Shown: positions 6,740 through 29,385 of the stretch, piece by piece
How positions within the stretch are numbered: the stretch's first letter is position 1
Layout: every line of letters starts with the position of its first letter
Assembly (NCBI RefSeq): GCF_031769215.1
Contig: NW_026781915.1
Span: 2,170,001-2,234,000 of the forward strand
Origin: Ylistrum balloti
Lineage: Eukaryota
Direction: 5' to 3'
Length of the DNA: 64,000 nucleotides
Program-made: the position numbers and the translations under genes
The notes under the pieces: model-generated
What the model was told of the DNA's origin: nothing
Seen by the model: only the letters and a program-made list of their open reading frames with translations
The model's database searches: none

Positions 6740-11427
<4,688 letters not shown>

Positions 11428-15376: not shown

Positions 15377-15855
15377 TCATAGAAGTCTTGGTACGCAACA
15401 AGCTGATAGCTTTCTTATTCTAAGATCTTCCTTAAGAATGGAATGTACTCTTTCCTGTGAAATCCCAACTGCACTGGCTGTATACCTCTCTGTAACTCGC
15501 CTGTAACCCATAATATCATTGACTTGATTGGTCATTTCTGGGGTTGCAACAGTGGCAGGCCTTCCAGGATAGGCGTCATCCCCAAGACTCTCTCGCTTAA
15601 ATTCTGTCACCCACGTTTTCATTGTGGGATATGAAGATGCATCGTTCCCTAGTGTTGCTACCATATCAATATGGATATCCTTAGGTGATATACCTTTCTT
15701 ATGTAAATACTGAATCACTGCTCTTTCAACAATTTTCGACATAAATGGCAAAAACACCAGTGTTCAGGTACAAGGCCTTAAATCGTCAGGGAAAAAGGAC
15801 CTATCTGCTTAACTTCTTCAATACAAGGCTCACAACTTATCAATCAGCCCTCGTA
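15377..15855 (-). mobile_element. Truncated mariner (Tc1/mariner) transposon: left TIR plus the N-terminal HTH region of the transposase
   Basis: ORF 15377..15757 encodes RAVIQYLHKKGISPKDIH...WVTEFKR...GRP...VGISQERVHSILKEDLRIRKLSACCVPRLL, the mariner HTH region ending in a WVPRLL-like motif. Upstream on the minus strand is TA|CGAGGGCTGATTGATAAGTTGTGAGCC (15855-15827), a mariner-style TIR start. No DD34D domain or right TIR was found. Confidence 0.85.
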
Positions 15856-18057
15856 CATTAGTAGATAAGACACCGTGGTTCACTTTTATTCTCTTGTACA
15901 CATACTTATTACAAACAAATGATAGCCGCATTGACAGTAATTAGATCAATTGGAATAAATACTTTTCCTAGTCCGGTATATAGAATACTGGATTTCAGTG
16001 CAGTCGGGATGCACAACTTACTAGTTTATAAATATACAAGTAAGGAAATCCCGCGAACGGGTTTCGTCGGCCTCGCTCTGACTCGCGTTAATGACTAAAA
16101 CTTCAAGGATATAAAAACCAGAGAAACAAATCTGATTAAATAAAAATCCTGTCAAAGATATTAAATAATGTTTTTTTGAAGGCGTTTAAATCAGTTAGTT
16201 AATACTGGGACATAATTCAATGACTTTCTGATAATTCTCAAACCACTCAAAAAATCCCTCGCCTCAAAAATGAATCGGCATCTCAACTGAAGTCCAGATT
16301 TTAATTGTACAACCCATGGTATGATTGAATGGAACATGCTCGAACAGTAAATGTTTCCTTACTGACGAATTTGGAACCGTATGGGATCAATGCACCCCAA
16401 TCTGAAGAGCGTTAACATACGCAACGGTGAAGGTCGGGTGACATGTGATGGACTCCACGCGTCTGAAAAAGACCCAAGCTGCTAATATTAGCACACATTC
16501 AACCTGCGTTAGACAACAAAGAGTATACATCATATATCATAAGTTGAGTAACAAATAAGCAAATTACAGTCAAACGTTCAATATCACACAATTATCAACT
16601 GACTAGTATATAATAAATCTTGCTATCGTAGACCTTTGCGAGAAAAGAGCAAAGGTCGTCTGTACTTTTCAAAAGCACATTGTTTGTATAAGGTGTGTAT
16701 AAAACTGCCCCCTCTATGGAGCAAAGGAAAGGGATCTAAATCTTCATTGCTCTCTTGATTTTGGTTGTGAAACAGCTATATGTATCGGTTTAGGCCGAAA
16801 CATTTTTTTTCTGTGAGAAATTCTAGTAAATTTCAGGAGATTGGCGGAAATTTCTCCGGGAAGTTGCGATAACTACCGGAAACAGCCGAGTTGAAATGAA
16901 TTTAAGAAACCCCCTATGGAAATATGAACTCGTCCAACAGCATTTAATAAAGATCAATTTTTCATTGGATGAAAATATACCATTCTAAAACAATATATGA
17001 AATTAATGTCATGTATTTTTTAGAAATAGTAAAAAAACAAGCAAAATGAAACAAATTTGATTTAAAGTTACTTGTTTAGCGTTAGCTCTACTAATTTCAT
17101 TTTGGCAAGAACAGAATGGAAAAGTCCGTGACTGTCTTTGAGCTCGAAAAAGTGTTGAAGGTGGTAAATTCAACCAGGATACAATGATGAACTCGAGTGG
17201 ATCGCAAAGAAAATGGTATTTATTTGCTTACGGTCTCACTGTGTGATGAAATTGACATTGGTGTAGTTAGGCCTCACATAATAAATTTAGTGCTAGTATT
17301 TATATTTTGAAGAATTTTATCGAAATCAAAGCAGGTACATATTTACACACCCTACCAGTTACATTTACATGTTATGTATTTGTTACAACTATTACATGTA
17401 TAGTTGCCATTAATATAACGTAATTAGGTTAATGTTCTGCTTGCTTTTAAGAAAAAAGTACATGTAGGCCGATACAGTTCACATTTTTCTAAAGCAAGGT
17501 ACAATAGGCCTTAGCTTACTCCGTAAGGGTAAGGGAATGCTTGAATCATGGATTATTAAGCCCCCACTCTGACCGTCATTTTCCTTCATAATCAAAGAAA
17601 AAGTTTTCTGACTTCATTTCCTACACAACTTGTCATTGGAACTTCATGCTTGGGGCATGTGTTCACCATGGCGAGGCTTGTGTCCAGTAAGAAGATTACC
17701 GACCTACATACTGGCCTTAGACGGTTACATCTTAAAATCGTTTTCTAGCTTATTCTTCTACTGGCACTGCTAGTCACTGGAACTTACTACATAGGTTTAC
17801 CTTGGTGAGGCTGTGTCCTGTATTGGAAGTTGGTCACTGACCCACACACTGTCTGATCTACATAAAACAAGTTTGTACTCGATCTCCTGCACTTCTTGTC
17901 GCTGGTACTTTGGGGCATGGGTTCACTTGCAGTGCATTCCTAGCATATATTTTCACATACAGTTTGGGAACTGTAATTTGCCAAAAGTGTCTTACTGACT
18001 ATGAGATGAATATTAATTAAGTTGATTTTTGGTTTTAGTCAAGATGAAGAGAAGGAT

Positions 18058-19911
18058 ATGGCACAATTTCACAGACCTGAACTGCTGAATTTCACACACA
18101 GTGAGGCAATGAATGAAATAGATCGTATGAACAGAGACCTTAACAATCTGAGAGATGTCATGATAAAACATAGTGGTGAGTAAATATCAAGTACTAACTT
18201 CAGCTTGTGGATTTCCCACCTCCCACCCCCACCCAAATATTCCATGAACTTAACTTATAAACATAAAACATATATTTTAAAGCCTTTAAGCTTTTCGAAA
18301 TTATGAAAATTATGACCGATTTCAAAACTGCTGTACAACCTAGTTTGTTTATAATAATTGTGTTGTAAATCTATTGATCAAATAAAAGAATATCATTAAT
18401 ATTTTGACAAACCTGGTTACCATAAACTTGAATGTATGAATGAGGGATGAGCAGATTAGTTCTCAATACTGCATAAATGCAATTCCTTGAAAAAAAAAAA
18501 ACAAAAATCCAACAAGAGCCCCTCGAGTGATCTAAGCAGCCACCATCACTTTATCTTTATTTGTTCTTTAAAAGTTAGATATTTTCCTTTCTCTCCTCTG
18601 TTCTTGCTCTTAATAATATGAAATTTAAGATAAAATTTGAATTAAGATTTAAAACATGGCCTTACCATCATTGAGAAAAACTGATAACAGAAGATTCTAA
18701 TCTAGAGTCTTTAATTCTACAACCCAGATAGTATAGTTATATCAATTGTAAACCACTAACTCTATAAGAGTTTGGTGACTTCCGCCTAATCTAATAGATC
18801 ATTACGTCACATTTCTACCATTATCTACGACGTAACCAACTAATGTTGTTGTTATCAATATATGATGATGTAACAATCTGGGACTGTTGTTCTGAAGACG
18901 GGTCGCTTGGACATGTAAGCAACTGTTGCACGAATAAATCGTGAATTGGAAAGGAGCTGCTCGTGTTGTCATCACTCTTGACACGCATTGTTCTTTAAAA
19001 GTTAGATATTTTCCTTTCTCTCCTCTGTTCTTGCTCTTAATAATATGAAATTTAAGATAAAATTTAGATTAAAATTTATAAGATAGCAATAAATACCTTT
19101 TAACTGCCAAACCTAGATAGTTTCTAGCCACTTTTGTTTTTTAAATTAGTTCAAAATTCAAAAGGGCACAACATTAAAAATGAGGAATCTATGAATGATC
19201 CATCTGATGCTTCTGAAGAAATTGTGATCAGAAACATTCTTTCTCAAAATCCATGATGACCACTTATCCGCCATTTTGTTTTTCTGATCAAATGATTGTG
19301 CATAACTAGGGACCAAGTTAAGAAAGAAAGTACTTCTCAAAAAAATTGTTTACGGGTGAACAGATGACTGACCATGGATGTAAACAAAACATCTGACTTT
19401 CCATAAGGACAGCTCACACATGATTTTATCGTTCATAATTGTTAATAGTTTGTGTCATCATTTTATGGAATGTAAGCTCATCGTAAATTGAATTGATGGC
19501 ATCAACTTAGATGGATTTTGTGGACTAGCTGTTTGTCTGTGTGGTGTATTCAGTTCACCATAGTGACTGGCAGTATTCAACAATAGATAAGGGCGGAAGA
19601 AAATAATTGATCACCTCTGTGAGATATAAACAGAAATATAGTTCCTTTGAAGAATTTTTAAATCAGAGGGGTAAAAGATTCTTGACTTCAGACCAGCAAT
19701 ATGTAAAAATTTATTTGCTTGTCTTTTTTCAGTGCGCTGTCATATGTTGGAAGTTGACTTGGCTACACAGTTCAGCCCTGACCTTCAAGTGGCTCTTAGA
19801 TCAACAGAGGAGGACTGCAGTCGATGTAAAGAAGCTCTACTAAGACATGAAAATCAAAAGTCCATGATATTAAATGACAGTGAGGACCAAATACATTTGA
19901 CAGATCAGTGA
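18058..19911 (+). CDS. SYCE3-like synaptonemal complex central element protein, 98 aa, two coding exons (not in the ORF track)
   Basis: Exon 18058-18175 (acceptor ttttag at 18038, gatATGG start, donor AGTG|gtgagt) joins exon 19733-19911 (acceptor gtcttttttcag, TGA) across a phase-1 intron. Protein: MAQFHRPELLNFTHSEAMNEIDRMNRDLNNLRDVMIKHSVRCHMLEVDLATQFSPDLQVALRSTEEDCSRCKEALLRHENQKSMILNDSEDQIHLTDQ. It aligns by eye with recalled human SYCE3 (LNKDLEKLLEEMEKISVQATWMAYDM...PTLAESMRRLEDAFVNCKEEM). AATAAA at 20028. No symbol given because orthology is unconfirmed. Confidence 0.7.
18561..19065. repeat. Pair of identical 78-bp direct repeats (18561-18638 and 18988-19065) in the intron of the SYCE3-like gene
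   Basis: ttgttctttaaaagttagatattttcctttctctcctctgttcttgctcttaataatatgaaatttaagataaaattt occurs twice, about 350 bp apart. Confidence 0.9.
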
Positions 19912-20782
19912 ATTAGTGAATATTTTCAAAATTTTTTTTTCTGTAATGATGAACTTTCTTTAAAAAATGTTATCGCAAGTGAAATATGTCGATATCTTAT
20001 AAAAACAGTTGGTAATGTTATATTTTAAATAAATATGAAAGAATTGTTAAACAAATGTTGTTCTTAGTGTCATATACAACCAGTAACCAGTTAAGGTAAT
20101 CCGGACAATCTATTGTGACATCCATTCTTTTGTTTATTGCAACAACAATCCTCTTTTTACTTTTATACACAAACTGTTAGATTTTAAAGAAACTTTAGCC
20201 AATTTTAGGAACCAGAAACTACTCAAAACTACATTCCTGATGACTGAAGGTATTATGTGTATACCTTGTTTGTCTTAATTAAACCATCTGTCAGATTTTA
20301 ATCGATCATTTTAGTAATTATTGGTTTGGCGAAGAAAGAATGATTGTAGCCATCAATCAAGAAAAACAATGACCAATACAGTATCACTCTTTATTTCTTT
20401 AGTAATTTGTCCAACTTATTACAAAGAGAATACCTCATATGATTTCATGTTTCAGGGATTTCAGGCCACTGTTACTATCTATAGAAATTGTAGACCAATT
20501 TAGAAACATTCCAGTGTATTCATTATGTAAGGGAACCTGATCAACCTGAAACATCACAATAAGCTGAGATGAGCTGTAGTTTCATGGTTCTAAGGTCATG
20601 ATTCCCCTCCCAAATTAAAGTCAGTGTTCTAGACACTCATTTCTTAAAAAAACTTCGATCAAACTGTCCATAGTTTAAAGTAGGATATAGATATCCCTTT
20701 AGCTCTTATGTCAAGGTCAACATTACTTAACAATAATTAATATAAAGGACTGAATACTTTTAAAAAATGATGTTTTCTCATT

Positions 20783-22036
20783 TCATGTAAAAACCCATGC
20801 CTGTTGAATAGTAGAGAAAAAGCAAACCTTCTCAGAATTGTTTTCCTCACTAAATTGTCCACATTTGAATGCTAGAATATCCATCAAACTCTTTGGAATA
20901 GGCAAAGTTTCTATTTTTGGCACAATATTCCCAGAAATAAGATTTCGAATTCTGACACAGGCTATGTGCTGAAGTGATCTAGGGTTGCTGCCAGTCTCTA
21001 TCAATAATTCACAAAGAGCTGGTAGTTTTTGGACTACAAATGGAAATTGTTTTTCCCGAATCCATTTTTCCTTGCTAAAATCATAACCTGACTCAAGGAG
21101 AAGATAGACCAACTTCACATTCATACGTGCTGCTGCCAGGTACAAAGGTGACTGACCATTACAGTCAAAGGTCTGGATGTCTACTCCATGTTTAATTAGC
21201 AATTTACAAGCATTAATCTTACTGTGATAAAACGCAAGATGGAATGGTGTAAAACCCTGCATGTTTCTCCTGTTTAAGTCCAGATCTTGTGTTAAGAGGA
21301 TTTCCATCACACTCAGGTATCCACTACTTGCTGCTACATGTAAAGTTGTATTCTGATCCAAAGTTACAGCTTTGACAGAAGAGTGTTTTTCTAGAAGTAG
21401 TTCCACAACATGTGGCTGGCCATAGCACACAGCAGTGTGAAGAGCAGTCCAACCCTCTGCATCAACCCTATTCACATCTGCACCATTATCAATTAGTATC
21501 TCACACACATTAAGATGACCAAGGCAAGTGGCTGCATGCAGAGGTGTGAAACCATCAGTTTGTGTCACATTCACCACCGCTCCCTTTTGGAGCAGAAGTT
21601 GTGTTGTGTCAGTACGCCCGTAAGTTGCTGCCCAGTGAAGAGGTGTTCGGTGGTCTGAGTCCTTGCTGTTGATGTCCACTCCACACTCAATGAGACGGCC
21701 TACAATGTTTGAGTAGCCCTTAGACGCAGCCAGGTGTATAGGGTGTCGTAACCACATCGTGTCCTTCTGACACGACATGGTCAGGGAACTGTGGTTTGAT
21801 ATGAGAAGCTCTAACATATCTTCTTGTCCAAGGCAGACGACCCTACAAATTGGACTTGTTCCCCTGCGTTCAAAATTTGGCGAGACACCTTTGATTTGAA
21901 GGAGATTCTGTGCGGTGGCCAGATCATGTTGCTCGATAGCTTGCAGTAAAGAATCCTCATCAGTCATATCAGCTTGTGACTCCGAATCTGCTTGATTAAA
22001 CCAAAAAATATCCATATCGGCAGAAGATTCAGCCAT
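20783..22036 (-). CDS. Ankyrin repeat and SOCS box (ASB-like) protein, 417 aa, intronless CDS
   Basis: About nine ankyrin repeats (HPIHLAA, TPLHWAA, TPLHAAT, TALHTAV, TTLHVAA, TPFHLAF, SPLYLAA...) and a C-terminal SOCS box PRSLQHIACVRIRNLISGNIVPKIETLPIPKSLMDILAF. Acceptor- and donor-like sites near 22112 and 22793 suggest a 5'UTR intron. It cannot be assigned to a numbered ASB. Confidence 0.9.
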   Translation of the reverse strand: MAESSADMDIFWFNQADSESQADMTDEDSLLQAIEQHDLATAQNLLQIKGVSPNFERRGTSPICRVVCLGQEDMLELLISNHSSLTMSCQKDTMWLRHPIHLAASKGYSNIVGRLIECGVDINSKDSDHRTPLHWAATYGRTDTTQLLLQKGAVVNVTQTDGFTPLHAATCLGHLNVCEILIDNGADVNRVDAEGWTALHTAVCYGQPHVVELLLEKHSSVKAVTLDQNTTLHVAASSGYLSVMEILLTQDLDLNRRNMQGFTPFHLAFYHSKINACKLLIKHGVDIQTFDCNGQSPLYLAAARMNVKLVYLLLESGYDFSKEKWIREKQFPFVVQKLPALCELLIETGSNPRSLQHIACVRIRNLISGNIVPKIETLPIPKSLMDILAFKCGQFSEENNSEKVCFFSTIQQAWVFT

Positions 22037-28300: not shown

Positions 28301-29385
28301 CTGTTACTTACTTGAGACAGAGAGATGACGAGTATGATATATCTGTTGTTACTTACAGGATAGAGAGAGATGACGAGTATGATATATCTATTGTTACAGG
28401 GTAAAGAGAGATGACGAGTATGATATATCTGTTGTTACTTACAGGGTAAAGAGAGATGACGAGTATGATATATCTATTGTTACTTACAGGGTAAAGAGAG
28501 ATGACGAGTATGATATATCTATTGTTACTTACAGGGTAAAGAGAGATGACGAGTATGATATATCTATTGTTACTTACAGGGTAAAGAGAGATGACGAGTA
28601 TGATATGTCTATTGTTACTTACAGGGTAAAGAGAGATGACGAGTATGATATATCTATTGTTACTTACAGGGTAAAGAGAGATGACGAGTATGATATATCT
28701 ATTGTTACTTACAAGCTAAAGAGAGATGACGAGTATGATATATCTATTGTTACTTACAGGGTAAAGAGAGATGACGAGTATGATATATCTATTGTTACTT
28801 ACAGGGTAAAGAGAGATGACGAGTATGATATATCTATTGTTACTTACAAGGTAAAGAGAGATGACGAGTATGATATATCTATTGTTACTTACAGGGTAAA
28901 GAGAGATGACGAGTATGATATATCTATTGTTACTTACAGGGTAAAGAGAGATGACGAGTATGATATATCTATTGTTACTTACAGGGTAGAGAGAGATGAC
29001 GAGTATGATATATCTATTGTTACTTACAGGGTAAAGAGAGATGACGAGTATGATATATCTATTGTTACTTACAGGGTAGAGAGAGATGACGAGTATGATA
29101 CATCTATTGTTACTTACAGGGTAAAGAGAGATGACGAGTATGATATATCTATTGTTACTTACAGGGTAAAGAGAGATGACGAGTATGATATATCTATTGT
29201 TACTTACAGGGTAAAGAGAGATGACGAGTATGATATATCTATTGTTACTTACAGGGTAAAGAGAGATGACGAGTATGATATATCTATTGTTACTTACTAT
29301 TGTTACTTACAAGGGTAAAGAGAGATGACGAGTATGATATATCTATTGTTACTTACAGGGTAAAGAGAGATGACGAGTATGTTAT
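28301..29385. repeat. 45-bp minisatellite (gtaaagagagatgacgagtatgatatatctattgttacttacagg) x~24
   Basis: Near-perfect tandem copies; they produce the spurious 237-aa ORF (RVKRDDEYDISIVTY)n. Confidence 0.97.

Follow-up and report, generated by a model that had tools for sequence, protein, structure and literature searches.

In mammals, SYCE3 forms a compact dimer and binds the N-terminal core of SYCP1 in a 2:1 complex; it remodels the lattice of SYCP1, assembles with itself, and brings in SYCE1-SIX6OS1 and SYCE2-TEX12 (PMC7614228). Its loss blocks synapsis and leads to sterility, and in the mouse its coding sequence lies on two exons (PMC3102746). Pro53, a loop residue, is required for the closed conformation of the SYCE3 dimer (PMC6556580), and two surface aromatic residues, Trp41 and Tyr44, are needed for higher-order self-assembly, as described in mammals only (PMC6556580, PMC7614228). 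SYCE2 and TEX12, likewise short helical meiotic proteins, have been traced in the literature to early metazoans, and SYCE3, the mammalian adapter for the SYCP1 lattice (PMC7614228), is the one central-element protein still called vertebrate-only. It is given as vertebrate-specific in the part of PMC4132317 that summarises the work of Fraune et al., a 2014 proteome survey listed nothing like SYCE3 for either Mollusca or Hemichordata, and Nematostella was described in October 2026 as being without SYCE3 "to our current knowledge" (PMC13693662). Among the papers searched (to October 2026), we found none pairing SYCE3 with the oyster, no report of a mollusc orthologue, and no mention of the gene and run identifiers of the family described below. 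These papers agree with the original prediction for this locus, in which SYCE3 was described as reported from vertebrates only.

The window, that is, the whole 64-kb stretch of DNA that was analysed, has a GC content of 35%, contains no N, and holds 187 open frames of at least 58 codons. The original prediction placed here a two-exon, SYCE3-like gene of 98 amino acids and drew its conclusion for the case of a molluscan host; the host is indeed a mollusc, the scallop Ylistrum balloti (Pectinidae). We found that both proposed exons, 18058-18175 and 19733-19911, and the GT-AG intron between them are present in the window, while a third coding exon further upstream (17184-17215, followed by an acceptor between 18038 and 18039) had been omitted. 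The proposed start codon, the ATG at 18058, exists and opens a frame of 39 amino acids, a split Val, 58 amino acids and TGA, but it encodes Met18 of a 115-amino-acid protein, of which the 98 amino acids are residues 18-115. This gene is annotated at window positions 17184-19911 on the + strand (contig JAUZWB010000590.1, assembly GCA_031769215.1) as LOC132561370, with the 115-amino-acid product named "uncharacterized protein" (hereafter P0025). The contig was identified through an exact match of the protein encoded by the neighbouring single-exon ankyrin/SOCS-box gene. A piecewise comparison of translations showed that P0025 corresponds to three window stretches, 17184-17213 (residues 1-10), 18040-18174 (residues 12-56) and 19735-19908, joined through the split codons TG+T (Cys11) and G+TG (Val57). 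Once matched in this way to all three exons, P0025 was used as the query for whole-protein searches. Its N-terminal extension is also kept in Mizuhopecten, Pecten and Argopecten. The gene model is as follows:

17184-17215, + strand: coding exon 1, with the start codon, 10 codons and 2 bases of Cys11; donor GTATTT
17216-18038, + strand: intron 1, phase 2, GT..AG, splitting the Cys11 codon as TG+T
18039-18175, + strand: coding exon 2, with the linker, Met18 (ATG at 18058) and most of predicted helix 1
18176-19732, + strand: intron 2, phase 1, within the Val57 codon (G/TG), containing repeated DNA; donor GTGAGT, polypyrimidine tract closing with CAG at 19732
19733-19911, + strand: coding exon 3, with the end of predicted helix 1, the conserved core motif, the loop with Pro72, predicted helix 2 bearing Cys85-x2-Cys88, the tail, and the TGA stop at 19909-19911
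20028-20033, + strand: candidate polyadenylation signal AATAAA, 117 nt past the stop, recognised from the sequence only

Since the length of the open frame alone is not beyond chance in a window with this many frames, the case for a gene rests on conservation. In an exhaustive search of 1.84 billion proteins, the peptide of coding exon 3 alone detected 14 relatives at E <= 0.001, with the best at 5e-16, and a full-length profile built from six sequences extended the family to 36 proteins. All members are named "uncharacterized" or "hypothetical" in the source databases. The family includes bivalves (four scallops, Mytilus and the oyster Magallana gigas, with a second copy in Mizuhopecten), other molluscs (Patella, Haliotis, the chiton Liolophura, Batillaria, Littorina, Pomacea, Bradybaena and Babylonia), and a deuterostome, the acorn worm Ptychodera flava (Hemichordata). 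In an alignment of 16 sequences, Leu45, Leu62, Val64, Leu66, Ala67, Phe70, Pro72, Cys85 and Cys88 (P0025 numbering) are invariant, and Val57, His60, Asp65 and Gln69 are nearly so. When each exon was searched alone against Pfam and PDB, no relevant match was obtained. A word search with the peptide of coding exon 3 gave no candidate either, as the lengths it admits (32-101 amino acids) leave out the 115-amino-acid product.

Many of the database relatives proved to be exon-only mispredictions that begin or end exactly at the Ser-Val junction, indicating that the intron at this point is conserved. Direct mapping of the junctions showed that the same Val codon is split by a phase-1 intron in three species, with a slash marking the boundary between exon and intron: in the scallop (donor AGT G/GTGAGT; acceptor CAG/TG CGC), in Ptychodera (donor AGC G/GTAAGC; acceptor CAG/TA AAG), and in the oyster (donor AGA G/GTATTG; acceptor TAG/TT CGA). 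The scallop junction, which reads TTTTTTCAG/TG CGC at the acceptor of exon 19733-19911, is the phase-1 split of Val (AGT G/TG) that had been proposed for this locus. Close to the position of scallop intron 1, a phase-2 intron is present in the oyster orthologue as well. Transcript-like oyster contigs from two independent runs (SRR13374880 and SRR18748338) carry an uninterrupted coding sequence from which the 198-nt intron has been precisely removed, giving AGA GTT CGA, which shows that the oyster gene is transcribed and that its splicing follows the model. For Ylistrum, the sole public run containing the stretch is of DNA, and it shows an even depth of about 10 across the introns and no splice joint. 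The scallop locus is a real gene of three coding exons and belongs to a conserved family.

Intron 2 of the scallop gene contains a direct repeat of 100 nt (18561-18660 and 18988-19087; 94% identical, 427 nt apart). At two places in this intron, 18444-18627 and 18812-18995, read depth climbs to 100-140 from a background of about 10, and a contig from another individual skips 685 nt of the intron (from 18584 to 19270). The repeat is probably a polymorphic insertion of a repetitive element. About 1.4 kb upstream of the SYCE3-like gene, at 15377-15757 on the - strand, lies a fragment of a mariner/Mos1-type transposase (HTH_48, E 1.9e-7), and a read depth of more than 1,000 at this site indicates that the element is present in high copy. 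Further downstream, at 28319-29385, we noticed a minisatellite in which a 45-nt unit is repeated about 22 times (97% matches) and which reads as an open frame of 237 amino acids made of 15-residue repeats.

The resemblance of the family to SYCE3 was assessed in both search directions. The only Pfam match of P0025 was PF15191 (Synaptonemal_3), at E 2.6e-4 and 21.3 bits, with residues 35-93 aligned to positions 15-74 of the 92 in the model. This score is under the gathering cut-off of 27 bits. That value is an operational threshold and no biological feature, and the model was presumably built chiefly from vertebrate sequences. The Argopecten irradians orthologue, which is 68% identical to P0025 in the 16-sequence alignment, lies over the cut-off at 27.9 bits, followed by the proteins of Ptychodera (25.6 bits), Pecten (22.6 bits), Mizuhopecten (21.8 bits) and Haliotis (18.6 bits), with four more members lower. 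In total, 10 of the 16 family members matched PF15191 at E <= 0.1, all of them collinearly, from positions 11-18 through positions 71-85 of 92.

In the reverse direction, the six-sequence family profile searched against all PDB sequences placed SYCE3 (4r3q, 6h86) first at E 4.3e-4. The 16-sequence profile matched mouse SYCE3 (4r3q/6h86) over residues 7-83 of 88 at E 1.4e-5 and 28.2 bits, and the runner-up was at E 2.1. Single sequences used as PDB queries all ranked SYCE3 first as well (P0025, E 0.029; Ptychodera P0012, E 0.07; Argopecten P0027, E 0.089). Reciprocal searches therefore put SYCE3 closest to the family, in line with the SYCE3-like identity first proposed, and the best reciprocal match was not an unrelated coiled-coil family, since nothing other than SYCE3 appeared below E 2 in the reverse search. 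HMMER, run against the chain of mouse SYCE3, gave the alignment that the original prediction had proposed, including the one-residue gap before the loop proline. No Pfam match to SYCE2 or TEX12 was found, and SYCE2 appeared in PDB as an insignificant match (E 0.63) of the hemichordate protein. A word search with the hemichordate protein returned this protein alone and gave no bridge to echinoderms, amphioxus or vertebrates. FANCL_d2, second to PF15191 in the number of members matched, was judged spurious; it matched 6 of the 16 members, with a best E of 0.004, far weaker than PF15191.

AlphaFold2, run on P0025 with the family alignment, predicted a helix at residues 31-69, a break at 70-71 and a second helix at 72-110. 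Mean pLDDT in blocks of 10 residues was at least 88 over residues 31-100 of the monomer model, with a pTM of 0.38. The helix-turn-helix character expected for the protein is thus seen in the model as two predicted helices around a loop with Pro72, a residue that all 16 members share and that aligns with Pro53 of SYCE3. Foldseek gave no match with this model, and VIA-align returned generic long coiled coils alone (Z <= 6.6); comparison of the predicted fold neither helps nor hurts the link to SYCE3. Cys85 and Cys88 are invariant across the family, His60 is nearly so, and Cys59 is frequent. Cys59-His60 (19738-19743, in predicted helix 1), Cys85 (19816-19818) and Cys88 (19825-19827, in predicted helix 2) are kept in molluscs and in the hemichordate. 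We speculate that this Cys/His cluster on the two helices may form a putative metal site or some other specific contact.

These data lead us to the interpretation that the gene is real and that the small helix-loop-helix family to which it belongs is the counterpart of vertebrate SYCE3 in invertebrates and probably orthologous to it, a reading to which we assign a probability of about 70%. The possibility that the scallop frame is a chance open reading frame and no gene has virtually no weight. Although the window contains 187 frames of comparable length, the relatives of exon 3, the reach of the family profile and the splicing of the oyster orthologue refute it; the conservation spans two phyla and the last exon alone gives E values down to 5e-16, the intron positions are conserved, the oyster transcript contigs are spliced, and the source assembly carries an annotation of the gene. 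A less remote, but still distinctly improbable, explanation is that the resemblance to SYCE3 is convergent, and that the family is an unrelated group of small coiled-coil proteins with a similar helical composition. The weak E values of the single sequences (0.03-0.09), the position of most members under the Pfam cut-off, and weak matches to unrelated families, such as that to FANCL_d2 in 6 of 16 members, speak for convergence. PDB is rich in coiled coils, however, and with the 16-sequence profile SYCE3 alone came below E 2 there; moreover, every member aligned in the identical register in both directions, the match improved as sequences were added (from E 4.3e-4 to 1.4e-5), and the family and SYCE3 share the loop proline as well as the Ser-Val where the exons meet.

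We also considered true homology of the family to SYCE3 combined with another or an extra role, for instance as a helical hairpin stapled by a metal through its Cys/His residues and acting outside the synaptonemal complex. The invariance of Cys85 and Cys88, together with the near-invariant His60 and the frequent Cys59, would fit such a role, as vertebrate SYCE3 keeps the second Cys only; the equivalents of Trp41 and Tyr44 are not aromatic, the divergent second copy of Mizuhopecten has no PF15191 match, and the link to meiosis comes from sequence, not from expression. Nevertheless, the length of the protein, its arrangement in two helices, its loop proline and the mostly single-copy state in molluscs fit a conserved structural role, and the remaining vertebrate-type synaptonemal complex proteins have all been reported in invertebrates, so that a network of partners for SYCE3 is present there. 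We regard a different or additional role as unlikely, and prefer the reading that the family is the invertebrate counterpart of SYCE3.

If the family is indeed the counterpart of SYCE3, its function may be outlined by analogy with the mammalian protein: its members would dimerise, bind SYCP1, be expressed in meiosis and take part in synapsis. In the scallop, two copies of the protein would pair into a compact four-helix bundle that the proline loop closes, and the protein would most likely do in the bivalve synaptonemal complex the job that SYCE3 does in mammals. The presence of the family in molluscs and in Ptychodera, with the intron at the same position, speaks for an origin no later than the protostome-deuterostome ancestor, so that SYCE3 probably dates to the bilaterian common ancestor; this is the age that had been suggested from the scallop sequence, and the hemichordate member adds to the mollusc family in its favor. 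A more elaborate version of the scenario, for which we see slightly less than an even chance, is that the family is a true invertebrate SYCE3, that the full set of SYCE1, SYCE2, SYCE3, TEX12 and SIX6OS1 was present in the bilaterian ancestor, and that SYCE3 originally carried a Cys/His cluster, which may have bound a metal and so stapled or bridged the hairpins, and which was lost in vertebrates with the gain of the Trp41/Tyr44 self-assembly surface.

The surroundings of the gene differ among the species. No shared gene neighbourhood was seen across the scallop, hemichordate and oyster loci. In the scallop, the upstream neighbour (7432-10305, + strand) is a multi-exon adenylate kinase gene with ADK and lid domains, and the downstream, convergent neighbour (20783-22036, - strand) is a single-exon ankyrin-repeat/SOCS-box gene of 417 amino acids; neither of these flanking genes is known to resemble a neighbour of human SYCE3. 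The neighbour at the hemichordate locus is a kinase. In the oyster, contigs L003 (3-1118, - strand) and L004 (3-566, - strand) carry a divergently oriented open frame of 372 amino acids about 360 nt from the SYCE3-like orthologue. This frame has no Pfam match, and no counterpart of it was found in the scallop window or at the hemichordate locus; it and the oyster orthologue may be paired head to head, their 5' ends overlapping.

Two further members of the family deserve mention. The second copy in Mizuhopecten yessoensis (LOC110466489; P0002, 113 amino acids) is more divergent; it retains the core motif and the Cys-x2-Cys, and does not match PF15191. In P0042, a protein of 90 amino acids from a marine ENA metagenome contig, the core motif opens with Val-Gln-Ala-His, the Val-Gln-Ala being as in the aligned vertebrate SYCE3, and the remainder resembles the Ptychodera protein. 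Judged by these sequence features, P0042 may represent an intermediate deuterostome form.

Automated PF15191 matches are already stored in databases for the Argopecten and Ptychodera proteins; the link to SYCE3 was therefore latent in databases, unnamed and undiscussed. With the interpretation preferred here, the family is new in being the first branch of SYCE3 from invertebrates. With a counterpart in molluscs and a hemichordate, SYCE3 would be at least as old as the protostome-deuterostome ancestor, and research in bivalve aquaculture would gain a candidate meiotic marker gene, for example for work on triploid sterility.

In comparison with vertebrate SYCE3, which has 88 amino acids, the invertebrate proteins have 88-165, with a core of about 70, and usually carry a longer, poorly conserved N-terminal extension on an extra exon. 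The two groups are reciprocal best profile matches and are collinear over almost the entire SYCE3 chain. They have in common two long helices and a short loop with a conserved proline (a layout that is predicted for the invertebrate family), as well as a Leu of helix 1, the Ser-Val of the junction, an Asp, the Pro, an Arg, a Glu and the second Cys. In the invertebrate family, one intron interrupts the core coding sequence, and in the mouse two exons encode the protein, a likeness that concerns the number of exons. The strongly conserved core motif from Val57 to Pro72, which closes helix 1 in invertebrates, is largely replaced in vertebrates. His60, Phe70 and Cys85, among the best-conserved residues of the invertebrate family, are not found in vertebrate SYCE3, which of the four Cys/His positions keeps Cys88 only, as Cys69. 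Conversely, Trp41 and Tyr44 of SYCE3 align with Met61 and Val64 of the scallop protein, which are hydrophobic but not aromatic. A comparison of the invertebrate and vertebrate forms could thus separate ancient surfaces, such as the loop proline and the end of helix 1, from vertebrate inventions such as Trp41/Tyr44.
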